DNA from: Paramoeba atlantica
Lineage: Eukaryota; Protista; Discosea
Length of the DNA: 27,738 bases
Reading direction: 5' to 3'
Assembly (NCBI GenBank): GCA_977017575.1
Contig: CDRNVI010000202.1
Span: forward strand, 1 to 27,738
The first letter of the stretch is position 1. The number at the start of each line of letters is the position of its first letter. The translations under genes and the position numbers were made by a program. The notes below the pieces were generated by a model. That model was not told the DNA's origin. It saw only the letters and a program-made list of their open reading frames with translations, and searched no databases. Below, piece after piece: positions 1 to 25,452 of the stretch.

Positions 1-554
1 TTTTATATATTTATTTCCGTTAAATGTTTTAGTTACACAAGTAGGTAAAAGAGGTGAACCATATTTTGTTTATATAGCTAGCTTATTTTATTTTATATTA
101 ATAGCAAATTTTATTGGTTTAGTACCAAGTTCTTTTACTATTACAAGTCATATAATTTTAACATTTTTATTAGGATCAATTACTGTTATAGGGATTAACT
201 ATAATAGGTTTTTTAAAACAAAAATTACATTTTATACAGTTATTTATACCAAAAGGTGTTCCTAATATTTTATTACCTATGTTAATAGGTATCGAAGTTA
301 TTTCTTATATTGCAAGAGGTTTTAGTTTATCTATACGGTTATTTGCAAATTTAATGTCGGGACATTCATTAATACATATTTTATTATTTTTTATTGTAAA
401 AATATTAAAATTTAATTATATTATAGGTATTTTAGGAATATTATTAATAACTGTAATTTTTTTATTAGAGTTTGGTATTTCATTTTTACAAGCTTATGTA
501 TTTATTGTTTTAGTTTCTATTTATTTAAAAGATTCTTACGAAGCTGGACATTAA
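1..554 (+). CDS. atp6: Mitochondrial-type ATP synthase subunit a, 5'-truncated by window edge, one +1 frameshift at ~197
   Basis: Frame from nt 2 reads ...FILIANFIGLVPSSFTITSHIILTFLLGSITVIGI. Skipping one A at 197, it continues TIIGFLKQKLHFIQLFIPKGVPNILLPMLIGIEVISYIARGFSLSIRLFANLMSGH..., the hallmark subunit-a motif (SLSIRLFANLMSGH). TAA at 552-554. Confidence 0.95.
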
Positions 555-572
555 AAAACATTTATTTTAACA

Positions 573-892
573 ATGTTTAATATCTTAATTCCTTTGAAAC
601 ATTTATACCTATTTTAAGTTTTAGTTTATTTATTATAGGTATAGCGGGTATTTTTATTACACGTAGAAATATAATAATAATAATAATGTCTATAGAGTTA
701 ATTTTAGCATCTGTAAATTTATTATTTATTTTTTTATCAATATATTTAGATGATATATATGGTCAGATATTTGCTTTATATATATTAACTATAGCAGCTT
801 CTGAATCAGCTATTGGTTTAGGATTAATAGTTATTTATTATAGATTAAGAGGTATTATATCTATAGATTATATTAGTACTATAAAAGGTTAA
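573..892 (+). CDS. nad4L: Mitochondrial-type NADH dehydrogenase subunit 4L; probable 1-bp deletion near 587-590 separates ATG 573 from the main frame
   Basis: The frame of ORF 686-892 extends upstream as ...ILSFSLFIIGIAGIFITRRNIIIIIMSIELILASVN...AASESAIGLGLIVIYYRLRGIISIDYISTIKG*, with typical Nad4L motifs. ATG 573 lies in a different frame. Confidence 0.93.
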
Positions 893-911
893 ATTTTTTT
901 ATATACTTTTT

Positions 912-1403
912 ATGTATTTATTAGTATTATATTTACCATTAATAAGTTTTTAATTATAAGTTTTTTTGGGCGTTTATTAGGAAATAAAGGTAGTTTTATA
1001 ATTGCGAATTTTAATATGTTATTAACAGTGTTGTTATCATATTATATTTTTTATGAAACTGTATTAAAAGGTTCTGTATGTTTTTTAAAAATTATTTTCA
1101 TGATTTAATATAGGTTTATTTAATGTAACATGAGGATTTATTTTCGATCCTGTAACAGGTGTTATGTTAATTGTAGTAAATACAATATCTTTATTAGTTC
1201 ATTTTTATTCAATAGGTTATATGTATAATGATCCTTTTTCTTCTCGATTTGTATCTTATTTATCATTATTTACATGATTTATGTTAATGTTAGTTACAGC
1301 TGATAATATATTACAATTATTTTTAGGTTGAGAAGGTGTTGGTTTAGTATCTTATTTATTAATTAATTTTTGATTTACAATAGCAGATGCAAACAAAGCT
1401 GCC
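912..1403 (+). CDS. nad5: Mitochondrial-type NADH dehydrogenase subunit 5, N-terminal ~165 aa, cut off by the telomere array; two 1-bp frameshifts; TGA read as Trp
   Basis: [13 protein letters not shown] / one T missing in run 947-951 / ...VCFLK / extra A in run 1087-1091 / LFSWFNIG...[36 protein letters not shown]...[56 protein letters not shown] occupies conserved Trp sites (GWEG 1329-1331, NFWF 1371-1373). Confidence 0.95.
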
Positions 1404-2043
1404 TAAACCCTAAACCCTAAACCCTAAACCCTAAACCCTAAACCCTAAACCCTAAACCCTAAACCCTAAACCCTAAACCCTAAACCCTAAACCCTAAACC
1501 CTAAACCCTAAACCCTAAACCCTAAACCCTAAACCCTAAACCCTAAACCCTAAACCCTAAACCCTAAACCCTAAACCCTAAACCCTAAACCCTAAACCCT
1601 AAACCCTAAACCCTAAACCCTAAACCCTAAACCCTAAACCCTAAACCCTAAACCCTAAACCCTAAACCCTAAACCCTAAACCCTAAACCCTAAACCCTAA
1701 ACCCTAAACCCTAAACCCTAAACCCTAAACCCTAAACCCTAAACCCTAAACCCTAAACCCTAAACCCTAAACCCTAAACCCTAAACCCTAAACCCTAAAC
1801 CCTAAACCCTAAACCCTAAACCCTAAACCCTAAACCCTAAACCCTAAACCCTAAACCCTAAACCCTAAACCCTAAACCCTAAACCCTAAACCCTAAACCC
1901 TAAACCCTAAACCCTAAACCCTAAACCCTAAACCCTAAACCCTAAACCCTAAACCCTAAACCCTAAACCCTAAACCCTAAACCCTAAACCCTAAACCCTA
2001 AACCCTAAACCCTAAACCCTAAACCCTAAACCCTAAACCCTAA
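1402..2043 (+). repeat. Telomeric array (CCCTAAA)n, ~92 copies, C-strand on + (left-end orientation)
   Basis: Uninterrupted 7-mer repeat over 642 bp, no variant units seen; the reverse complement is TTTAGGG. Confidence 0.99.
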
Positions 2044-2189
2044 TTAGTCAATTTTTTCGTATCAATTAAAAAGCTCCAAATGATGAAAAATGAATGATGG
2101 AAGATAAATCCTATTCAATAAAGGTTTTTTTAAACATATTATCAACCTTAAATCAATTTTTTGATTTCTGACATGATTTTATTAACACA

Positions 2190-2920
2190 TTACAAAAAGT
2201 ATTTTCTCAAAAGTATGCTCACATAAAAGGTCTATAAAAATCTCTCAATATCAAAAAATGAAAAATGAAAATAATAAAGTAGTGTAAAAACATCAAATAA
2301 ATCTTAAAATAAAGAAAATCAATTTGAGATTTATTTATTTTGTTTTTATGTAGGGAGCAATAATATTATTTGTTATAATAGGGAAACAGAGTTAAAAGTT
2401 CCAAAAGTATGTTTACAAAAGGATGCTGTAAAAATCTCTCAATATTAAAAAATGAAAAATAAAAATAATAAGGTAGTGTAAAAACATGAAATTAATCTAT
2501 GTTTAAAGAAAACTTTGAAAAATTTTATATATTTCCCAATTATGTAGGTACCAATTCATTGATGTTTTTTTAAAGGTAAAATACATAGAAAAAATACTCA
2601 TATTTTTGGACTCTATAAAAATCTCTCAAAATGAAAAAATGAAAAATGAAAATGATAAAGTAGTGTAAAAACATGAAATTAATCTATATTTAAGGAAAAC
2701 CATGAAAAATTTTATATATGACCTGATAATGTAGGGAGGAGATTAAAATTATATGTTTGTATGTAAAAATCATATAAATGTTTTCTCAATTATTTTTGTT
2801 CTATGAGACAAAATCAAAAATCTGGCTGGTCCAAGTTTTAGAAAATAGTTTTTTTTATTATGTTATCAAAAAAAATTAGTCCCAGCTCACTTGTTTCCTC
2901 AATATGTAGGGTGCCACTTT
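2190..2920. repeat. Telomere-adjacent degenerate tandem repeat, ~190-bp period, 3-4 copies
   Basis: Motif (c)tataaaaatctctcaa...aaaatgaaaaat..aataataa.gtagtgtaaaaacat recurs at ~2231, ~2426, ~2612. atgtagg recurs at ~2348, ~2542, ~2729, ~2904. Confidence 0.8.
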
Positions 2921-3106
2921 AAAGTCCTATCATTATATGTGAATTTCATACATAAGACCTCTTCGTAAACTGCCTATAACTTTTTGTGACATATTCAGAT
3001 TTTAAAAAAAAATATGCCATTAGATAGACAAAAATGAGGCGCATCTTTCTACCAGTCTTGATTTTCCGGATTGTGAAAAAAAGTAGTTCAAAACGAAGTA
3101 ATTAGG

Positions 3107-3119
3107 CCCTAAACCCTAA
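3107..3119 (+). repeat. Two-copy telomere remnant CCCTAAACCCTAA at the exact left edge of duplication copy A
   Basis: ggCCCTAAACCCTAAt at 3105-3120, same orientation as the main array. Confidence 0.6.
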
Positions 3120-3258
3120 TTTCTCTCTTCTCTCTTCTCTCTCTCTTTCTTTCTCTTTTCTTTCTCTTTTCTTTCTCTTTTCTTTCTCTTTTCTTTCTCT
3201 TCCTCTCTCTCTTTCTCTCTTTCTCTCTCTCTTTTCTCTCTTTCTCTTTCTCATTCAA

Positions 3259-5075
3259 ATAAATAGAAAATCACCAAAAAAGAGAAATTCACATATGGAT
3301 ATGAGAGGAGGTTTCTTTTCTCTCTTCTCTTTCTCCCTTCTCTTTCTCTCTTCTCTTTCTCTTCTCTCTTCTCTCTTTCTCTCTTTCTCTCTTTCTCTCT
3401 TTCTTTCTTTCTTTCTTTCTCTTTTCTTTTCTCTCTCTCTCTTCTCTCTTTCTCTTTTTTCTTCTCAATAAAATTTTCTCTCCTCTTCTCCACTTCTCTC
3501 TTCTCTTCTCTCTTCTCTCTTCTCTCTTTCTTAGGAGCAAGGATGTCACGCCCAAAACAATCAACAAATACGAATGAAGCAAGAGAAAAGGTTTTCTCTC
3601 TCCACTTCTCTTTCTCTCTTTTCTTTTCGCTTCTCTCTTTATCTTTCTCTTCTTTTGCTTTCTCTCTTCTCTTTCTCCCTTCTCTTTCTCTCTTCTCTTT
3701 CTCTTTCTCTCTTTCTCTCTTTTCTTTCTCTTTTCTCTCTCTCTCTCTTTTTTCTCTCTCTTTTTTCTCTCTCTTTTTTCTCTCTCTTTTCTCTCTCTCT
3801 CTCTCTTTTCTCTCTCTCTTTTCTCTCTCTCTTCTTCTTTTTCTCTCTCTCTTCTTCTTTTTTTCTCTCTCTCTTTCTTTTCTCTCTCCTCTCTATTCCC
3901 TTTTTCTTTTTTTCTCTTCTCTCTTTCTTTTTCAAATAATAATTTTTCTTTCCTCCTTTTTTTTTCCTTTTTCTTTCCTTCTTCTCTTTCTTCTCTCTCT
4001 CTTTCTTCTCTCTTTCTTTCTTAATCCAGTTTTTTATTTTCAGATTTTTGTGAAAAGATGAGAGAATCTTGGTTCTGTTCAGAACGGCTGGATTTGGGGC
4101 AAGTCCAAGGAAGCAAACTCGATCATGTCAAGTTCAGACAAACAAAAAGTACTTTCTTCCATATTACTAGAATCAAAGTCTCAGTGACTGTCTCGAACAC
4201 CTGACATTTCAAATCTCGAAGCAATCATTACAATTCTCCTCACCAAACTTTTTCCTGATCTTCTCCAGGATCACATTTCCCGACATCCTCCTTCTTTGTT
4301 TTCAAAAGCACTCTTACTTAGTCTCTCTTATCCTTGATCACCTTCAGAGGGACTGTTTCAAGATTCGAAAGTTTTATTTTTTGGTTCACAACGTGCAATT
4401 CAGCCAGCAGAGCTTCCCACCCGACCATCAGAAGAATACAAGAAATTGGCCAAGAATGGAGGTTGTGGCCTTCATGTGGATGCAGAAGATCCAATTTACA
4501 ACTCAGGTTTATTGATGTATTATTCCTGTTTTGTTGAACCAAATGTTGAAGATTGTGATCATGATCATCCATTACCACAAAATGATTTGGTTTGTTTCCA
4601 ACATCAGAATGGTGGAAGGGGGGCACGAATTCAAACTATGCATCCTAACTTTCTATGTCTTGCATTCCACCAATCTCGGAAGTGCCACAGCACAGTTTTT
4701 CAAAAGAATGATGTTTTTCAAGAAGGTATCCATGGTTTCCGGGTGGTGACTTATCCAATCAAAGCAGTCGAAGATCTTGTTGAACATTGTCAAGATGAAG
4801 CCCCATTTCGGTCTGTCCTCCAACAATGGAAGACTGCCCTTCTAAATTCCTCTTCTCCAAAAAAAATTGCAATGTGGCCTTGATCGAATCTTCAACAAAA
4901 CCCTGCAGGAGGTTCTTTACTGATTCAAAAGCTCCTTTCTCAGGGATGCCAAATCAAACTCTCAACCCCCACTCCCTCAAGATGAGACTCCAGAAAAGGA
5001 GTCGAGAAGTCGAGACTTTGGAATAAAATAACCCTTTCCTTCTTTCAACTTCAACTACTTTCAAGGATGTGATAA
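3259..5075 (+). pseudogene. Spliced 2OG-Fe(II) dioxygenase (TET/JBP-like) pseudogene, copy A; lacks 5' exons, retains the catalytic domain
   Basis: Phase-compatible GT-AG introns 3311-3534 and 3591-4043 join ...KSPKKRNSHMDMRG|GARMSRPKQSTNTNEAREK|IFVK.... The frame of 4044-5075 contains 6 TGA and no TAA/TAG until 5073. Motifs: GLHVDAED (H 4473, D 4479), LAFHQSRKCHST (H 4686), FRVVTYP (R 4740). Confidence 0.65.
3591..4043 (+). repeat. Polypyrimidine (CT/CTT) low-complexity tract forming an intron; similar tracts at 3121-3250, 3311-3534 and 16100-16915
   Basis: Nearly pure C/T. Bounded by GT (3591) and CAG (4041-4043). Confidence 0.8.
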
Positions 5076-6749
5076 ATTTTTTTTGGCAACATGTCTTTCT
5101 CTTTCAAATAATTTGACTCAAAGCAAAAAACTACAAAAATAAATTTTCTTCACATTATTGGCAAACTTCAAGGAGAAATAGGGACTCCTGAAAACAAACT
5201 GTTTCATATAACAGTTATGCAATGATTGTGGTGGTGATTAATGTGGCAATCCCAACTTCAAACCCAAAGAGAGACCAAAAAAAAAGACAGCGAGAAAGGT
5301 GTCCTATCAGTGGGTCCCTTCTCAAACAAAGGACTGGAGAAAGAGAGAAAAAGAAAGAAAGGGGTTTAGTTGAATGGAGGGAAAAAAGAGAGGAGGGGTG
5401 AACACAAAGAAGGGGAGGGAGAATAAAAGAAAACAAATATCAAAAACAAACACTAAAACCAATGTGATTCGCAACAACAATGTGACGATGGTGTGGAGGC
5501 AGTGATAAAAGGTTTCAAATTGTTGATTAAATATGTCACCGATAATCTCAGCGAACTGAAGAAAGAAAAAAAAGAAAGGATTTTTTAGTTAAAAGGAGAG
5601 AGGGGAGAAAAGGAAACAAGGAGGAGGGAGGGGGGGGGAATACAAAAAAGGGGAGAATAAAAGAAAACAAGTATGTGAAAAACAAACACAAAACTGATGA
5701 TTCACAACAACAATGCGATGATGGTGGTAGTAGTAATCCATGGCATATTTGTAAAGCACTCTACTGATTTAACAAACAATCTTTCAATATTAATAAATCG
5801 ATGTCCATTCACCTTGTAATCTGACACACAATTACTTTTGCACAACAACATTCCAAGAGCTCTCTGCAACACAGTTGCTTGATCATCACTCTAATGTTGT
5901 TGTCATTTTGATTATCACATTGTGAAGAATCTTTTCTTCTGATACAAACCCTATATGCAAAAGTTTCAGAAGCTACTCTCTTTCCTTTAAAGAAATCACC
6001 ACCACCCGAACCTTCTTCCTTTGCTCCCCTCACCCTTCCCTCTCTTTTCTTCTAAAAAAACCAAAAAAAAAAAAAAAACCTCTTTGTGTGAAGAAGAAAT
6101 CAGCAACAAATACACTCAATATTCCCTCTCTCCTCCTTTGTTGGTGTTGGTTATTGAGTTGTTCTCATTGTTGTCTCACGTTTTATCGCGTCCTCTTTTT
6201 TTGTTGGAAAGAGAGAAAAAGAAAGAATTCCCAATTAAATAATCTTTTTTCTCTAGGCCAAATACACAAGTTTGCAAATCTCCGAAGGATTAGTGGCAAA
6301 TAAAAATTATCTCAATAAATTAATACCAAAAATAATTTTCTCATTACCAAGAATTTTCTTGATTTGCTACCAAACCCAAAGTACTGAAATTATTCAACAG
6401 AAAACACCCAATCTTTTGGTCGATTGAATGACTAAACTTTTTTCAGGAAACTGAAAAGGGAAAGAAAAGAAAAAAAAAAGGATTAATAATGTGTGTTACT
6501 ATGGAGGAGGGAAATACAAAGAAGGAAGAGAATAAAAGAAAACAAACAAAAAAAAGAAAACAAACACAAAACCCACCATAATTCACAATAACAATGATAA
6601 TTGGTAAAGGTGAAAAAATTATCACTTCAAACCTTATCAATTAAAACCCCAACAAACACACACACAGGCGAGAGAGAGAGAACTCTGGAGAAAGAGAAAA
6701 GAGAAAAAATTAGTGTTAAAAAAGGAAGGAAGGGGAGGAGGGAAAGGGG

Positions 6750-7095
6750 AGGGATAAAATGAATGTGGCAATCTTTATAATACATGCACACATCATTGAT
6801 ATTTGACAAACAACCTCTCAATAATTGATAAGGATTTAGGGTGTCCATTCACCTTGCAATCCAACACACACAAACACTTTCGTGCACAACACTCTCAACA
6901 CTCTCCAAGAGTGTGCTTTGAGAGAGCAAAACGTAGCCAGGACCAAAAAATGAAGCCCACACCAGCAAGTTAGAGAAAGGCACTGGTTTGTCAAAGTAAA
7001 ATCATGCACAGTTAATCCCAACTACTTCCAGGAGGAAACTCACGGGGGTTCCAGAGTTCCATCGAAAAATCCCAACTTCAAACCCAAAGAGAGAC
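6750..7095 (-). pseudogene. Decayed coding-like island of unknown function (copy ~20270-20600)
   Basis: Minus frame reads FEVGIFRWNSGTPVSFLLEVVGINCAxFYFDKPVPFSNLLVWASFFGPGYVLLSQSTLLESVESVVHESVCVCWIARxMDTLNPYQLLRGCLSNINDVCMYY with only 2 TGA. In copy B, CGA-TGG has become CAA-TAG. Confidence 0.35.
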
Positions 7096-7934
7096 AACCA
7101 AAAAAAAAAAAAACAGCGAAAAGGATGTCCCCCCCTTGGTGTGTCCCTTCTGAGAAAAACAGAAACTGACTGGAGAAAGAAAGGGGTTTCATTGAATGGA
7201 GGGGGAAATATGAGGGGAAAAACATAAAGAAAAAGAATCAAAGAAAACATATATGACCAAAAACAAACACTAAAACCTGATGAGATTCACAACAACAATA
7301 ACATGATGGTGGAAGTGGGGTGATAGAGCACAGAGCAAGGGGGGCATCCTCCAACAAACTCAACAATCAGACATTAACAAAAACAAACTCTCGGTTTAAG
7401 TTTTCCTTTTATATTAAGAATTCTATGAATTTCCAACAAACATCTTAACAACAAAGGAACAATACAACAGCAATTTGTGATGAAACACAAATAAAGACCA
7501 TCCAAAACGCTCCCTAAACCCTTTTGGGAAAACCCTTTTGGGAAAACCCAAAGGAAACACACAAAACAACACATCAAATCAGGAAGCATCTTTGTGAGTC
7601 GCAACACACACACACACTTTGATATTTTTAACAAACAATCTCTCAATATATTGATAAAGGGTTTAGGGTGTCCATTCACCTTACGATTGGTGGGGGGAGG
7701 GGAGGGGATGTGGCAGGAAGGAACTAGAAGGGAAAGAGAAAAGGAAAAGATTAGTGTTCAAAGGAATGAGGGAGGGAGAGAGGGGGGAAAAGAGGAAGAG
7801 AATAAAAGAAAACAAACATAACAGTTATGCAACGATGGTGGTGGAGATCAATGGCAATCTTTGTGACATATTTGATAAATAATCTCTCAATATATTGATA
7901 ATATTGGTGTCCATTCACTTTGCAATCCAATACA

Positions 7935-10185
7935 CAAACCTTTATCAATTAAAACACCTCACAAACCTAATGAGAACTGAAAGAGAAAAGAGAAAAGAGA
8001 AAGGAAGGATTTCGTTCAATTCAATGTAAGAGGGAACAGGGAAGAAATACAAAGCAAAACAAAAACAAAACAAAAACAAAAATAAAACCAATGAATTTTA
8101 CAACAATATATTATTATAGAAGTGGTGGATCAATCAAAACAAAAAAAAACAGAGAACTGCCAGTTCAAAAAACAGAAAAAGAGAGAGAGAAAACCAGATG
8201 ATTGTTTGGGGCTTTTGAAAAATTATTGTCAAATATTTTAGGAACAACACATGTCATGAAACAGTAGCACACTTCTGGAACATAAGAAGTCAAGAAATTA
8301 TCCAACAATAACAATGACATCTCTCTTTTTTTAAAAAAAAAAACATAATCAGGAAAAAAGAGAGAAAAGAGAGGGAAAAGAGAGGGAAAAGAGAGGGAAA
8401 AGAGGAAAAAAAAAGAAAACCAGAAAAGGAAAGTGAACACACAACAAAACCTTTGAAGAAGAGAAATATAATTCTTTTTTTTTAACAAATATATTTACTT
8501 ACTGATTACAAAACTCATCTCCCTTCGAAAAAAATCAGTTTGGAACGACAATTAAAAGAAAAGAAAAAGAAAGAGAAAGAGAAAAAAGAAGAAAAGAAAG
8601 AAAAGAAAAGAAAACCGAAAAAAACATTGTAAAAACTGTTCAAACTAAGGAAACAAAATTTTAAAATCTTATTTGGTGAGGAGAAAGAGAACAAAAAAGA
8701 CACCAAGAGGAGGGGGTAGGAGAAAACAAAAAGAAAACAGAAACAAAAAAGAAATGATCCATTAATCATCAAACAAATAGAGAGAAAAGATAGTCAAACC
8801 AAAAAAAATCAAAACAACCACCTTTTATCATGAAAAAGAGGGGGAAACACAAAAGGAGGAGAATAAAAGAAAACAAAAAAAAAAAAAACAAACACCAAAC
8901 ACCATGATTCACAATAATAATAATTGGTAATGGCGAGATATTGTCATTTCAAACTTTATCAATTAAAACCTCAACAAACACCCACAAGCAAGAGAGAGAA
9001 AGAACTCTGGAGAAAGAGAAAAGATTAGTGTTAAAAGGAATGAGGGGGAGAGAGGGAGGAAAAAGAGGAAGAGAATAAAAGAAAACAAACCCTTCATATA
9101 ACAATGCAACAATGATGGTGGATTAATGGTTTCTTTGTAACACACACACTACTGATATTTGACAAACAATCTCTCTTAATATTGATGCAATTCAACACAC
9201 AAACACTTTTGCACACAACAACAACACTCTCCAAGAGCTCTTTGCAACGCAACAGCAAAGTGTATTGCTTGATCATCACCCAAAACCCTTTCAATCAAAA
9301 CCCACATCTTGAATGTGGAAATAGCAGCAGTAGTAATAAGTGGTTTTAAAATCCTTATCAATTAAAACACCTCACAAACCCTGATGAGAACTGAAAGAGA
9401 AAAGAGAAAAGAGAAAAGAGAAAAGAGAAAAGAGAAAGGATTTCATTCAGTTCGATGGAAGAAATACAAAACAAAACAAAAACAAAACAAAAACAAAAAT
9501 AAAACCAATGAATTTTATAATAATATATTATTGAGGTGGTGGATCAATCAAAACAAAAAAAAAACAGAGAACTGCTAGTTCAAAAAACAGAAAAAAAGAG
9601 AAGAAAGAGAGAGAAAACCAGATGATTGTTTGAGGTTTTTGAAAAATTATTGTCGAATATTCAGAACAACACACGTCGTGAAACAGCAGCACACTTGCGT
9701 AACACAAGAAGTCAAAAAATCATCCATCAACAATGATGACATCTCTCTCTTTAAAAAAAAACATAATCAGGAAAAAAGAGATAAAAGGAAATAAATATTT
9801 GAAAAGAAATACGATTCTTTTTTTTTTAACAAATATATTTATTTCCTGATTACAAAACTCATTCTTTCTTTGAAAAAAATCAGTTTGGAATGACCAATTA
9901 AAAGAAAAGAAAAAAGAAAAGAGAAAAAAGAAGAAATGAAAGAAAAGAAAACCGGAAAAAAACTTAGTAAAAACTGTTCGAACCAAGAAAATAAAATTTC
10001 AGCATTTTATTTGGTGAGGAAAAAGAGAACAAAAAGTGCACCAAGAAGAGGGGGCAGGAGGAAACAAAAAGAAAACAGAAACAAAAAAGAAATGATTCAT
10101 TGTCGATCAAACAAACAGAGAGAAAAGAGAGAGAAAAGACAGTCAAACCAAAAAAAACAAAACGACCACTTTTTCACGTGAAAAA
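7935..10185 (+). repeat. Internal ~0.9-kb direct repeat (7935-8835 and 9352-10185), mirrored in copy B
   Basis: Both start ttatcaattaaaacacctcacaaacc..atgagaactgaaagag and end caaaccaaaaaaa.caaaac.accac.tttt..gaaaaag. Offset ~1.4 kb. Confidence 0.85.
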
Positions 10186-12159
10186 GCAATTCATCATTTA
10201 TTTTTAGCACTCTAAAATATACGTCAGCCTTTTTACTACCTTTTGACTTTGGAGTAGATGAATTTTTATATTTTATTTTTTATGTTTTTTTCAATAAAAC
10301 GAAAATAACAAAAATACTCACAAGAAAATCTGATTTAATATTTTGCTGCCCAAAAATCTTTTTTTTTTTGTTTTTTTTTTTGTTTTTTGCCTTGAAAAAC
10401 ATGCTGTTGCTTGTTCGGGGGGGATGGAGGGAGTTGCGGTCAGGGGAGCAAAGGGAAAAGACTTTTTTTGCTTCTTTCAAACAATTCTTTTTTTGTTTTC
10501 TTTGTGTGTGTAAAAAAAAGAGAAAAAGAGTTGATCTTGATGAGGTGAGAGATCGCTTCAAAAACCACATGCGGAGAGAGGAAGGAAGAATTGTGGTGTG
10601 GATTGCTCAGAATTCAGAACATTATCCCTCCCCTATGTGATCAGGTTTTCTTCTTTGTTTCCTCTCAGTGTTTTTTTTTTTTTTGTCTTTTCTCTCTTCT
10701 TTTCCCCCCTTTTTTTTTTGATTTTTGATCTCTTTTCCTTTTGTTTGTGTGTCTTTTGTTTGTGTGTCTTTTGTTCGCCACCCTAAACCCTTGTTTTTCA
10801 CACTTGTTTTCGTCATGTTTATTTTTCCTTTTTTGGGTATCATGATGGATGAGGTTTGAGATGTGGTTCTCTTCATCCTTTTGTTTGTCTTGTCTTTTTT
10901 ATTTGTTCTTCTTTTTTTGTTCTTTTGTTTGTTCTTTTCTTTATTGTCTTTTTGTGTCCTCTTTGCTCTTCCTTTTTCCCTTTTTCCCCTTTCCCTTTCC
11001 ACCTTATTCTGTATTTCAAACCTCTACCTTATTCTGTTGTCTTTTATTCATTTTGAAGTCTTTCTCACTGCTTTTTCCTGTCGAATCTCCCCCTGGTTGA
11101 TTCTCCCCTCTTTTGTTTTTCTCCTGTTTCCTTTCTTATCTTTTCCTCAAAAATTTGTATTTTCTTCTCACTTTGATTGTTCTTTCTTATTTGGAGTGTT
11201 TTCCTCTTTTGTGTTTTTCCCTCTCTTTTGTCTTTCGTTGGTGCTTTGTGCTCCTTCAACCCTGCCTGTTATGTTTTGATTCATCCTTTTGTTTTTTGCC
11301 ACATTTGATTTTTTTCTGTGTTTTCTCTCTTTGAATATTTTCTCTTTTGTTCAAAACCCTATTCTTTCTTTCTTTCTTTTGTTGTTCCTTTTATTTGATA
11401 TAAACCACACCTTCTGCTTTTTTTCAATTTGATCTTTGGATTGACTTTCATTTATTGTTTTGTTGTTTATTTTCTGTGGGGATCTCATCAATTCTCTGAC
11501 ATTTTCCCTTTCCCCCCCTCCTCTCCTCCCCCCCAAATCTTCACTTCTCCCCTCTTTTCCTTTTCTCTTTCATTGATATCTCCCCATCTTTACTCTAATA
11601 ACCTTATTCTCTCTCTTCTCTCTTTTTAAATCTTTTTTTCTTTCAATAGAGTGTAGTTGTGGGGTAGAGGAAGTTTTTCTCCCCAAATTTGTCGTCATTG
11701 CAATCTTTTTCTCTCTCTTTTTTTTCAATCTCTTTTGCAAGTACTTTTTTCTTTTTTTTTCATTTTCTTTTCTCTTTCTCTCTTTTAAAGAAATAAAATA
11801 AAATGACCAATTGCTGCTGCTGCTGTGTTGTTGTTGTGGTCAGATGTCAACTATCACCCCATTTGTCTCTCCCCGAACAAAAATATTATTGCTTTTTGGA
11901 GTCATTTTTGAGTGCTGCTAAATCAGATTTACTTCTTTTATGGTAATTAGTTGTTGTTGATTAATTATTTATTGTTTTTTGTTTGTTCTTTGTGTGAAAT
12001 TCTTATATATGAAAATTATTAATATTTTGGAGATGATTATTTATTGTTAATATTTAACATGTTATTTTTCTGTTGTATTATCAATCCATTTTTATTAAGG
12101 TTTTGCTTTCATATATTTGTTGCTCTTGAATAATATAACACCTCTCTTTGTTTTGGTTT

Positions 12160-13260
12160 GATTCCTAGTTGGTTCTTATTTTTTAATTTTTTATTTTTTT
12201 TTTGGGAGTCAAAATTCAGACTTTTGATCGATTTATTTTTGGGTTCAATTCTTCATTGGTTCATATTTTTTTTTTTAATTTTTTTGGGGAGTCAAAATCC
12301 TTCTGTGACGAGAATTTTGATCAATTTATTTTTGGGTTCAATTCTTCATTGATTCATATTTTTTTTTTAATTTTTTTGGAGAGTCAAAATCCTTCTGTGA
12401 CGAGAATTTTGATCGATTTATTTTTGGGTTCAATTCTTTATTGGTTTATATTTTTTTTTTTTAATTTTTTTGGGGAGTCAAAATCCTTCTGTGATGAGAA
12501 TTTTGATCAATTTATTTTTCGTTCAATTCTTAATTGGTTCATATTTTTTTTAATTTTTTTTTGGGGAATCAAAATCCTTCTGTGACGAGACTTTTAATCG
12601 ATTTATTTTCACACCAGGCTGGCTAAACCCTATGCACTTTGAGTTATGAATTTATCAATCATCCAAATCAACCCTGTTTATTCCTTTCAAACCTGCAAAA
12701 AAAATCATGTCTATATCAGTTTTTTTGGTTTTTTTTTTTGATTCACCACTCTTTTTTGTTTTTTTCTTGTGTTTTGAGTTTCAGAAAAGTTGAAAAATGA
12801 GAGAAAAACAAGATTTGTTCTTCTTTTTTTCAAGTTTTTTTTGTAAGCTTTGTTGTTTTTTTGGTTTGGGAGTCTTCTTGTATCTTCTTGTATTTTTTTC
12901 TTTCATTTTTTTATCTTTTCAAGAGAAAACAAAGTTTTTGTGTTTTTTGAAATTCTAAAAATGAATTTTTTTTTGTATTTGGCTGGATTCTGAGTATTTT
13001 ATTTTTTGGAATTCCGAAAAAGAAAGATTGTTTTTCAAAATTCTAATTTTCAAAGGTTTGTTCAAAATTGAGTTGGAACTGTTTATTTGCTAAAGTGGAA
13101 CTTTTTTTTTGAGGCCTTGAATGGAAGTGACAGGGTTAGTTTGGATGATTGATAAATTCACAACTCGAGGTGCATAGTTTAGCCAGCCTGGAGTGATGGG
13201 TTCAATTCTTGATTGGTTCATATTTTTTTTTTTTTTTTTGGAGAGATCAAAAATCCTTCA
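12160..13260. repeat. ~93-bp tandem repeat, ~5.5 copies, interrupted by a TIR element
   Basis: ga(g/a)tcaaaat at ~12206, 12289, 12381, 12475, 12566. Unit: gagtcaaaatccttctgtgacgagaattttgatcgatttatttttgggttcaattcttcattggttcata(t)n. The unit resumes at 13197 (tgggttcaattctt). Confidence 0.92.
12609..13196. mobile_element. Non-autonomous TIR element (MITE-like), ~590 bp with ~80-bp imperfect terminal inverted repeats
   Basis: Left end tcacaccaggctggctaaaccctatgcactttgagttatgaatttatcaatcatccaaatcaaccctg matches the reverse complement of right end cagggttagtttggatgattgataaattcacaactcgaggtgcatagtttagccagcctggagtga. The interior is AT-rich and non-coding, and the element splits one satellite unit. 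Confidence 0.85.
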
Positions 13261-14015
13261 TTTTTTTTCTTTTTTTTTTCTCATATGAATTATTGAGTGA
13301 ACTTTATAGATTTCACTTTTCTTCTTGTTATGTTAAGCTGTTTTGCTTTTTCTTCTATTGTATTAATTGAACTTTGTGTTGGTTACTATTATCAAAAGAA
13401 AGAGAAGAATAGATTAAAATCTTTTCTATTATATTATTTCCTTTTTTTTTATGTTTTTTGTTGACCTTTTTTTTGTTTGAATTTTTTTCTTCTTTCTTTT
13501 TTCTTTCTTTAAATCCTTTTTATTTCTCTTTCAACTTGTTTTCTATTTTTTTTTTTTCTTTTTAATTTTTTTCAATTGTTTTTTTTAAAAAAATAATAAA
13601 TAATTTTTCAAAATAAATTGAATGAATTTATTTTTTCAATTTTTTTAAGAAACCATTTTCTTTCTCTTACAACCATTTATTTTAAATAAAAATCTTTTCT
13701 TTAAAGAAAAATAAAAAAAAAGAAGAAATTCTAAGTTGCAGGAAAACCTAATGTTGCAAAAAGACTTTTAAAAAAAAATATTGATTTAAAAGGAGTAAAG
13801 AGCCTAAACCTATAAAATAATAGGTTGAACTGGGCAAGAGCTATAAACCCTTCTTTGTTGCTAGTAGCAGCAGCAGTTCGAATTGGAGGAGGGAATTAAG
13901 AGAAAATAGGAGGTGGAGTGGTGTGACTCCCAGCAGCAGCCACAGAGGATGTTGAGGATGACCCACCAACCACCACCACCATCACAACATTCAATTGGCA
14001 AAAATTTGTTCTTAA

Positions 14016-20400: not shown

Positions 20401-23400
20401 AACACTCTCAACACTCTCCAAGAGTGTGCTTTGGGAGAGCAAAACATAGCCAGGACCAAAAAATAGAGCTCACACCAGCAAGTTAGAGAAAAGCACTGGT
20501 TTGTCAAAGTAAAATCATGCACAGTTAATCCCAACTACTTCCAGGAGGAAACTCACGGGGGTTCCAGAGTTCTATTGAAAAATCCCAACTTCAAACCCAA
20601 AGAGACAACCAAAAAAAAAAACAGCAAAAAAGGTGTCCCTCAGTGTGTCCCTTCTGAGAAAAACAGAAACTGCCCAGAGAAAGAAAGGGGTTTCATTGAA
20701 TGGAAGGGGAAATATGAGGGAAAAACACAAAGAAAAAGAATCAAAGAAAACATATATGATCAAAAACAAACACTAAAACCTAATGAGATTCACAACAACA
20801 ACATAATGGTGGAAGTGGGGTGATAGAGCACAGAGCAGGGCATCCTCTGACAAACTCAACAATCAGACATTAACAAAAACAAACTCTCGGTTTAAGTTCT
20901 CCTTTTATATTAAGAATTCTATGAATTTCCAACAAACATCTTAACAACAAAGGAACAATACAACAGCAATTTGTGATGAAACACAAATAAAGACCATCCA
21001 AAATGCTCCCTAAACCCTTTTGGGAAAACCCGAAGAAAACACACAAAACAACACATCAAATCAGGAAGCATTTTTATGAATTACAACACACACACACTTT
21101 AATATTTTTAACAAACAATTTCTCAATATATTGATAAAGGGTTTAGGGTGTCCATTCACCTTACAATTGGTGGGGAGAAGGGATGCAGGAAGGAACTAAA
21201 AGGGAAAGAAAAAAAGAAAAGATTAGTGTTCAAAGGAATGAGGGAGGGAGAGAGGGGGGAAAAGAGGAAGAGAATAAAAGAAAACAAATATAACAGTTAT
21301 GCAATGATGGTGGTGGAGATTAATGGCAATCTTTGTGACATATTTGATAAACAATCTCTCGATATATTGATAATATTGGTGTCCATTCACTTTGCAATCC
21401 AATACACAAACCTTTATCAATTAAAACACCTCACAAACCTGATGAGAACTGAAAGAGAAAAGAGAAAAAAGAAAAAAGAAAAGAGAAAGGATTTTGTTCA
21501 ATTCAATGTAAGGGGAAACAGGGAAGAAATACAAAGCAAAACAAAAACAAAACAAAAACAAAAATAAAACCAATGAATTTTACAACAATATATTATTATA
21601 GAAGTGGTGGATCAATCAAAACAAAAAAAAACAGAGAATTACTAGTTCAAAAAATAAAAAAAGAGAGAGAGAAAACCAGATGATTGTTTGGGGCTTTTGA
21701 AAAATTATTGTTAAATATTTTAGGAACAACACATGTCATGAAACAGCAGCACACTCCTGGAACACAAAAAGTCAAGAAATTATCCAACAATAACAATGAC
21801 ATTTCTCTTTTTTTTAAAAAAACATAATCAGAAAAAAAGAGAGAAAAGAGAGGGAAAAGAGAGGGAAAAGAGAGGGAAAAGAGGAAAAAAAAAGAAAACC
21901 AGAAAAGAAGAGTGAACACACAACAAAGTCTTTGAAGAAGAGAAACATAATTCTTTTTTTTAACAAATATATTTACTTGCTGATTACAAAACTTATTTTC
22001 CTTCAAAAAAAAAAATCAGTTTGGAACAACAATTAAAAGAAAAGAAAAAGAAAGAGAAAGAGAAAAAAGAAGAAAAGAAAGAAAAGAAAAGAAAACCAAA
22101 AAAAACATTGTAAAAACTGTTCAAACTAAGGAAATAAAATTTTAGAATCTTATTTGGTGAGAAGAAAGAGAACAAAAAGAACACATCAAGAGGAGGGGGT
22201 AGGAGAAAACAAAAAGAAAACAGAAACAAAAAAGAAATGATCTATCAATCGTCAAACGAATAGAGAGAAAAAACAGTCAAACCAAAAAAAATCAAAACAA
22301 CCACCTTTTATTATGAAAAGGAGGGGGGAACACAAAAGGAGGAGAATAAAAGAAAATAAAAAGAAAAAAAAACAAACACCAAACACCATGATTTGCAATA
22401 ATAATAATTGGTAATGGCGAGATATTATCGCTTCAAACTTTATCAATTAAAACCCCAACAAACACTCACAAAGAAAGAGAGAAAACTCTGAAGAAAGAGA
22501 AAAGAGAAAAGATTAGTGTTAAAAGAAATGAGGGGGAGAGAGGGAGGAAAAAGAGGAAGAAAATAAAAGAAAACAAACCCTTCATATAACAATGCAACAA
22601 TGATGGTGGATCAATGGTTTCTTTGTGACACACACTACTGATATATTGACAAACAATCTCTCTTAATATTGAGGCAATTCAACACACAAACACTTTTGCA
22701 CGCAATAACAACACTCCCCAAAAGCTCTTTGCAACGCAACAGCAAAGTGTATTGCTTGATCATCACCCAAAACCCTTTCAATCAAGACCCACATCTTGAA
22801 TGTGGGAATAGCAGCAGCAGTAATAAGTGGTTTTAAAATCCTTATCAATTAAAACACCTCACAAACCCTGATGAAAACTGAAAGAGAAAAGAGAAAAGAG
22901 AAAAGAGAAAAGAGAAAAGAGAAAGGATTTCATTTAGTTCAACAGAAGAAATACAAAACAAAACAAAAACAAAACAAAAACAAAAATAAAACCAATGAAT
23001 TTTATAATAATATATTATTGAGGTGGTGGATCAATCAAAACAAAAAAAAAACAGAGAACTGCTAGTTCAAAAAACAGAAAAAGAGAGAAGAAAGAGAAAG
23101 AAAACCAGATGATTGTTTAGGGTTTTTGAAAAATTATTGTTGAATATTCGGAACAACACACGTCGTAAAACAGCAGCACACTTGTGTAACACAAGAAGTC
23201 AAAAAATCATCCATCAACAATGATGACATTCTCTCTTTTAAAAAAAACATAATCAGGAAAAAAGAGATAAAAGAGAGAAGGAGAGAGGAAAGATAAAAGA
23301 AAACCAGAAAAGGAGAGCGAACACACACAACAAAACCATTGAAGAAAAGAAATACGATTCTTTTTTTTTAACAAATATATTTATTTCCTGATTACAAAAC

Positions 23401-25452
23401 TCATTCTCCCTTTGAAAAAAAATCAGTTTGGAACAACCAATTAAAAGAAAAGAAAAAAGAAAAGAGAAAAAAGAAGAAATGAAAGAAAAGAAAAGAACAA
23501 AAAAAAATTTGGTAAAAACTGTTCAAACCAAGGAAACAAAATTTCAGAATCTTATTTGGTGAGGAAAAAGAGAACAAAAAGTGCACCAAGAGGAGGAGGC
23601 AGGAGGAAACAAAAAGAAAACAGAAATAAAAAAGAAATGATCCATTGTCGATCAAATGAATGGAGAGAAAAGAGAGAGAAAAGACAGTCAAACCAAAAAA
23701 AACAAAACAACCATCTTTTCACATGAAAAAGCAATTCATTGTTTATTTTTAGCACTCTAAAATATATGTCATCCTTTTTACTACCTTTCAGCTTTGGAGT
23801 AGATGAATTTTTATATTTTATTTTTTATATTTTTTTCAATAAAATAAAAATAATAAAAATACTCACAAGAAAATCTGATTCAATATTTTGCTATCCAAAA
23901 ATCTTTTATTTTTTGTTTTTTTTTTGTTTTTTGTCTTGAAAAACATGCTGTTGCTTCTTCGAGGGGGAGGGTGATGGAGGGAGTCGTGGTCAAGGGGGGC
24001 AAAGGGAAAAGGCTTTTTTTTGCTTTTTTCAAATAATTCTTTTTTTGTTTTCTTTGTGTGTGTAAAAAAAAGAGAAAAAGAGTTGATCTTGATGAAGCGT
24101 GAGATCGCTTCAAAGACCATACATGGAGAGAGGAAGGAAAAATTATGGTGTGGATTGCTAAGAACATTATCCCTCCCCTATGTGATTAGATTTTTCTTTT
24201 TTGTTTTCTCTCAATGTTTTTTTTTTTGTTTTGGTCCTTTCTCTTTTCTTCCTTTTTGTTTGTGTGTCTTTTATTTGTGTGTCTTTTGTTCGTTACTCTA
24301 AACTCTTGTTTGTCATACTTGTTTTCGTTATGTTTATTTTTTTTTTTTTGGGTATCATGATGGATGAGGTTTGAGATGTGGTTCTCTTTATCCTTTTGTT
24401 TGTTTTATTTTTTTTATTTGTTCTTTTTTCTTTGTTCTTTTGTTCGTTTTTTTTTTTGTTGTCTTTTTGTGTCCTCTTTGCTTTTCATTTTCCCTGTTTT
24501 TTTCCTTCCTTTTTATTTTCCCTTCCCTAAACCCTTTTATGTTGTGAACCCCTACCTTGTTCTGTTGTATTGTATTCATTTTGAAGTCTTTCTCACTGCT
24601 CTTTCCTGTCAAATCTTCCCCGTCGATTCTCCCCTCTTTTGTTTTTCTTCTGTCTCCTTTCTTACCTTTTCCTCAAAAATTTGTTTTCTCACTTTGATTG
24701 TTCTTTTTTATTTAGAGTGTTTTCCTTTTTTGTGTTTTTCCCTCTCTTTTGTCTTTCATTGGTGCTCTCTGTGCTTCTTCAACAACAACCCTGCCTGCTG
24801 TGTTTTGATTCATCCTTTTGTTTTTTGCTACATTTGATTTTTTTTCTGTGTTTTTTCTCTTTAAATATTTTCTCTTTTGTTCAAAACTATTCTTTCTTTC
24901 TTTTGTTATTGTTCCTTTTATTTAATATAAACCACACCTTCTGCTTTTTCAATTTGATCTTTAGATTGACTTTCGTTTATTGTTTTGTTGTTTTTCTGTG
25001 GAGATCTTATCAATTCTCTGACATTTTCTCTTTCCTCCCCCTCCTCCCCCCCCCAAATCTTCGCTTTCCCCCTCTTTTCCTTTTCTCTTTCATTGATATC
25101 TCCATCTTTACTCTAATAACCTTATTCTCTCTCTTCTCTCTAAACCTTTTTTTCTTTCAATAAAGTGTAGTTGTGGGGCAGAGGAAGTTTTTCTCCTAAT
25201 TTGTCGTTGTTGCAATCTTTTTCTCTTTCTTTTTTTTTCAATCTCTTTTGCAAATACTTTTTCTTTTTTTTTCATTTTCTCTTTCTCTTTTTCTTTCTCT
25301 CTTTTAAAGAAATAAAATAGAATGATCAATTGTTGCTGCTGTGTTGTTGTTGTAGTCTATTCCCCCCCAAAAAAAAATATTATTACTTTGTACAAATCAT
25401 TTGAGTGCTGCTATATTAGGTTTACTTCTTTTGTGGTAATTGTTGTTGTTGA
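16100..25452 (+). repeat. Segmental duplication copy B (~9.3 kb); 17423-18700 replaces A 4527-5187
   Basis: Same anchors as copy A. The offset changes from ~12.9 kb to ~13.5 kb across the swapped block. Confidence 0.95.
17423..18500. other. Block unique to copy B, with a purine tract and a decayed coding-like stretch
   Basis: No counterpart in copy A. A + frame near 17920-18090 reads CDDEDEEMAEKHDDNHEHSSDGGGPPRFESPKFRNKLPVVR*QH*QPKL*VKRKEKK. Confidence 0.5.

Follow-up and report, generated by a model that had tools for sequence, protein, structure and literature searches.

Contig C202 opens inside a mitochondrial gene and, 1.4 kb further on, turns abruptly into a nuclear telomere, which raises the question of whether a chromosome end has captured organelle DNA or whether the two molecules were joined outside the cell. 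The window analysed here is this entire contig (27,738 bp), and we searched the assembly to which it belongs (45.7 Mb, 248 contigs) for related sequence. If the junction is real, then an intact telomere can join organelle DNA, which would provide a new route to NUMTs and to interstitial telomeres. As an artefact, its relevance is limited to curation. Judged from the sequence and its relatives in the assembly, the junction is very probably a library or assembly chimera formed outside the cell and no real genomic feature.

The mitochondrial piece at the contig tip

The first 1401 bases of the window are AT-rich (∼20% GC), and their mitochondrial genes read with TGA as Trp. Present on the forward strand are the 3′ two-thirds of atp6 (1–554, with the stop codon at 552–554), a complete nad4L for NADH dehydrogenase chain 4L (573–892), and the first third of nad5 (912–1401, the start being approximate). 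All three are recognized by Pfam, with matches to ATP-synt_A (PF00119) at 2–262 (E = 7e-14) and 192–551 (E = 1e-24), to PF00420 at 581–889 (E = 5e-24), and to the chain 5 N-terminus (PF00662) at 1134–1274 (E = 4e-14). The earlier note had described an atp6–nad4L–nad5 fragment in which nad5 stops mid-gene at ANKAA, and both the Pfam matches and the intact copies bear this out: in the window nad5 ends ...ANKA(A) at base 1401, where the intact mitochondrial copy goes on ...AIKAIIMNRIGD. In the mitochondrial copy L002 atp6 forms an intact 256-codon frame and the nad4L ORF is intact as well, and the nad5 frame of the mitochondrial contigs is open throughout the stretch that is present in the window. 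Further downstream in the otherwise intact copy L002, ∼1.45 kb into the gene, nad5 passes from frame 3 to frame 2 (3839–3869), which may be a residual consensus indel in that contig or a real feature.

In the window itself the reading frames are broken. To locate the differences we aligned positions 1–1401 with seven mitochondrial contigs from the same assembly and found 0 substitutions and four one-base homopolymer indels, each of them private to the window: an extra G at 191 that shifts the frame of atp6, a run of T at 592 in nad4L that is one T short, and in nad5 the loss of a T at 946 and an additional A at 1087. The indel pattern that had been noted from the letters is therefore truly present, and these four indels account for all of the frameshifts in the window's atp6, nad4L and nad5. 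Among themselves the mitochondrial contigs show 0–3 gap columns and 0–2 mismatches per 4.4 kb, and the mitochondrial tip of C202 is roughly 6–10 times noisier than they are. Four indels in 1.4 kb is the look that would be expected of an overhang resting on one long read, and in a decaying nuclear copy of mtDNA substitutions would be expected too.

The mtDNA of the window also occurs on 16 other contigs at ∼100% identity. All but one of these continue through the breakpoint (15/16), the exception being C118, which is ended by its own contig end (query base 1060). A linear mitochondrial genome carrying telomeres of its own is ruled out by this continuity and by block offsets that map circular. 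With the atp6 and nad7 blocks as markers, the offsets give a mitochondrial unit that maps as a circle of ∼39.4 kb, compared with the 48.5 kb given for the host mitochondrial genome by Tanifuji et al. 2017 (PMC5601477), who also describe xenic mixtures of an amoeba, a Perkinsela-like kinetoplastid endosymbiont and bacteria. In total the assembly holds ∼30 redundant mtDNA contigs of read-like size (13–41 kb), and the mtDNA-bearing set comprises C95, C108, C112–C116, C118–C121, C123–C129, C131–C135, C221, C227, C229 and C232.

The breakpoint, the telomere array and the subtelomere

Alignment with the seven mitochondrial contigs, together with a reading of the sequence, places the break between mtDNA and telomere at 1401/1402, with no linker and an overlap of at most 1 nt, the C at 1401 being the sole base attributable to both partners. 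The claim that nad5 directly abuts CCTAAA repeats is thus confirmed. These repeats belong to a 642-bp telomere array on the C-rich strand (1402–2043, forward strand), in which Tandem Repeats Finder detects a period of 7, 91.7 copies, 100% matches and no indels. The array leads into a 1,078-bp subtelomeric element (2044–3121, forward strand) that contains a 194-bp tandem repeat (2208–2746, Tandem Repeats Finder). Copies of the element, 96–97% identical, stand beside telomere arrays on C142, C212, C218, C231, C151, C195, C174 and C210.

Because other contigs start with the same C-rich array and pass from it into the same subtelomeric element, the mtDNA of C202 lies beyond the physical tip of the left telomere, as had been proposed. 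The argument from polarity is also correct. The strand that follows nad5 is the C-rich one, leading into normal subtelomere, and telomerase healing of a broken mtDNA end is ruled out as this is the wrong strand.

To see whether the array itself is unusual we compared it with the free C-strand arrays at contig starts (n = 8), which measure 550–815 bp, a range that includes the 642 bp of C202. Seven of the eight free contig starts share one base of the 7-mer as their first, and the C202 array matches this register. The contigs with the shared start are C138, C142, C151, C206, C212, C218 and C231, and the array of C194 begins 2 nt further in; the common start base may represent a defined C-strand 5′ end in the organism, or uniform trimming. 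The C202 array looks like a native, full-length telomere end, and what is seen is what ligation to a natural DNA end, once repaired, would be expected to yield. On C231, C151 and C210 the array meets a truncated subtelomeric element, as if the ends had healed at differing points.

The earlier note had also asked what lies left of the window. There is nothing: base 1 of the contig already falls inside the mitochondrial atp6, so that the contig begins within mtDNA. Its remainder (3100–27738) consists entirely of subtelomeric repeat families, long TC/GA-rich low-complexity tracts and internal duplications, and, for example, the stretches 11000–13850 and 23500–25450 match one another as well as many other contigs at 85–96%. 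A search of the assembly with 2044–27738 found no second, free-telomere copy of this chromosome end. The best matches are members of the subtelomeric repeat families at 85–97% identity, and since the nuclear part matches others at this level only, the C202 chromosome end is represented once in the assembly. Four public runs from one study contain ∼0.55 of the words from positions 1–6000 of the window.

Other mitochondrial joins and the origin of the junction

Mitochondrial DNA is not joined to foreign sequence on C202 alone. In at least eight small contigs it abuts bacterial-type DNA, again with no linker and at differing mitochondrial positions, and at these breakpoints the GC content jumps abruptly from ∼10–25% to ∼40–48%. 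One of them, C229, served as a mitochondrial reference query, and its first 9,475 bases proved to be non-mitochondrial; this part (1–9475) encodes GlnE and RecJ. The non-mitochondrial part of C232 (1–8958) carries a gamma-glutamyltransferase (Ggt), a lipid A acyltransferase and a phosphoglucosamine mutase, and that of C128 (18350–24482) carries MurA, PmbA and a Nif3-family protein. The partner sequences of the remaining contigs include DsbA-like and UvrD genes (C116), a transketolase (C134), an amidohydrolase (C135), transposase and phage-tail fragments (C95) and a 987-aa NACHT-HEAT protein (C112). Frame errors interrupt several of the bacterial-type genes, which again indicates a consensus of low depth. 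No protist mitochondrial genome can be continuous with a bacterial chromosome at eight different places, and these joins are chimeric molecules or reads. Mitochondrial DNA recurs in them as the common partner because it is abundant.

If the assembler were at fault, two correct reads would have been linked in the assembly graph through a repeat that they share. Errors of this kind do gather at contig tips and on small contigs. However, joining by overlap requires kilobases of common sequence, and the mtDNA and the array have at most 1 nt in common where they meet; the other mtDNA joins are just as abrupt. With no shared repeat to act upon, we reject a mis-join in the graph, which we regard as extremely unlikely.

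Telomere tips elsewhere in the assembly carry tails as well. On the 13,403-bp contig C210 (12062–13403), subtelomere is followed by a 529-bp G-strand array and then, from a join at 12590/12591, by 0.8 kb of the mitochondrial nad7 region, which runs to the contig end. This tail is 100% identical to at least 13 mitochondrial contigs, and at the join 4 nt (TTAG) are common to array and mtDNA. On C195 (20850–21591) the 267 bp between a 475-bp telomere array and the contig end belong to a dispersed nuclear repeat, with the join at 21324/21325; copies of this repeat at 90–95% occur on many contigs, and the structure represents a further chimera or else a telomere tract that is truly internal. Altogether, 3 of the 12 telomere-bearing contig ends that we examined (C202, C210 and C195, all small contigs) have foreign DNA beyond the tip.

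That telomere and mtDNA meet at two separate junctions, one showing a 4-nt overlap, is also open to interpretation as a biological process that recurs. In such a model chromosome ends would repeatedly capture mtDNA onto full-length telomeres in vivo, on C202 as on C210, and a form of telomere-tip NUMT formation that is not known to have been described would be at work; we hold this to be quite improbable. The recurrence on C210 with its 4-nt overlap is the only hint that favours a real capture, and in vivo capture as a whole, whether heritable or confined to a few cells, appears unlikely.

If the capture were heritable, an uncapped telomere would have been end-joined to mtDNA, leaving a telomere-tip NUMT and an interstitialised telomere on a chromosome that was re-capped further out. 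A clean junction with 0–1 nt of overlap is what classical end joining produces, a second junction of telomere and mtDNA with a 4-nt overlap is at hand on C210, and the assembly is without an alternative, free-ended copy of the C202 end. This model nevertheless has to accommodate an array that is full length and perfect, not eroded, and a contig that starts in mtDNA and displays neither a distal cap nor any further sequence. It also has to accommodate a mitochondrial piece with zero substitutions and homopolymer indels only. Finally, junctions of this type attach mtDNA to genes of bacterial chromosomes on at least eight occasions in the assembly, and no nuclear process could account for that. 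A heritable capture is the less credible of the two in vivo readings, with a probability that we put very low.

A rare somatic fusion is the other of these two readings. Here a chromosome end would have acquired an mtDNA fragment in one cell of the culture, or a handful of them, and a single long read would have caught the product. Damaged or dying cells do bring free mtDNA fragments into contact with chromosome ends, the 4-nt overlap on C210 is of the type seen in microhomology-mediated joining, and sequence alone cannot separate such a fusion from ligation in vitro. On the other hand the telomere is full length, and the joins of mtDNA to bacterial DNA reveal an active chimera process of non-cellular origin that is sufficient for the junction. 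We therefore consider a somatic fusion very unlikely.

We favour a chimera formed outside the cell because mtDNA is also linked to bacterial genes on eight or more other small contigs of the assembly, because the mitochondrial piece has 0 substitutions and only private homopolymer indels, and because the array has the length and register of a free telomere. The tails that C210 and C195 too carry beyond their telomere tips, and the start of C202 inside mtDNA with nothing to its left, point the same way. The earlier note had left two readings standing, a real capture by end joining and a chimera of the library or the assembly, and had called the artefact at least as likely. Of these the chimera receives strong support, from the recurrent joins of mtDNA to bacterial DNA, the errors of sequencing type, the full-length telomere and the contig start within mtDNA, and the real capture gains nothing. 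Besides the second junction on C210, two further points count against the chimera. The C202 end is represented once, so that no alternative contig displays it free, and a real insert longer than a read would likewise break the assembly inside high-copy mtDNA.

The chimera would have arisen when a 1.4-kb fragment of the very abundant mtDNA was joined to the natural end of a ∼26-kb terminal chromosome fragment. Ligation during long-read library preparation is the likeliest step; a switch of template in the course of amplification could also have produced it, as could the reading of two molecules as a single one. What was probably one chimeric read may then have been retained by the assembler to form the extreme end of the contig. 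An internal chimeric read would be outvoted by normal reads, but past the end of a chromosome no rival path exists that would lead to its pruning, and telomere tips would for this reason gather such tails. This is in line with the report that chimeric reads give rise to errors mainly at contig ends (PMC10359078). A tip that stems from one chimeric read would also leave the mitochondrial overhang at read-level quality, with private homopolymer indels.

For users of the assembly we advise trimming C202:1–1401, the distal tail of C210 and perhaps the tail of C195. Calling of NUMTs, horizontal transfers or symbiont links should wait until the ∼30 redundant mitochondrial contigs, among them the eight or more with bacterial DNA attached, have been taken out or divided.

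Comparison with known systems

Four known systems resemble C202 in part. In de novo telomere addition, as on C202, non-telomeric sequence stands directly against a telomere array. Healing adds the G-rich strand to a 3′ end, and 3′ of the broken mtDNA on C202 it is not the G-rich strand that is found. Unlike a healed end, C202 has the C-rich strand after nad5, continuing into normal subtelomere, and the polarity is thus wrong.

Telomere fusions and interstitial telomeres share with C202 the presence of telomere repeats internal to other DNA. Fusions of dysfunctional or uncapped telomeres, however, usually have a second chromosome end as partner and arrays that are short or eroded. The array on C202 differs in that its 642 bp are free of imperfections and match the usual length of telomeres in this genome. 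Rather than being short, eroded or degenerate, it holds 91.7 perfect copies and falls within the 550–815 bp range.

Capture of mtDNA at double-strand breaks, known in the form of NUMTs, was reportedly described in yeast break repair by Ricchetti and by Yu and Gabriel in 1999. In captures of this kind, as on C202, microhomology at the join between mtDNA and nuclear DNA is slight or absent. The sequence on C202 is clearly derived from the organelle, as it is identical to the seven aligned mitochondrial contigs bar the four indels and holds atp6, nad4L and nad5 as identified by Pfam. Known captures of mtDNA lie at internal breaks and have a nuclear flank on each side. On C202, by contrast, nuclear DNA is found on the right side only and the contig starts in atp6, the one nuclear flank consists of a telomere that is intact and of full length, and the mitochondrial piece is undiverged from the organelle genome.

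Chimeric long reads at contig ends, which stem from library ligation or amplification, are the remaining comparison. Such chimeras, like C202, have an abrupt, linker-free join at the tip of a small contig, with each side matching its own source perfectly. Both partners on C202 are undiverged copies of sequence that is intact elsewhere in the sample, the mtDNA having 0 substitutions and the telomere and subtelomere being of the normal type. The join sits at the tip of a contig of read-like size (27.7 kb) in an overhang of poorer quality, with 4 indels per 1.4 kb against 0–3 per 4.4 kb, and read-level indels in the overhang are likewise a mark of chimeric reads. Further joins that are not biological occur on C229, C232, C128, C116, C134, C135, C95 and C112, in keeping with the way in which chimeric reads recur in an assembly with many partners, including the DNA of other organisms.
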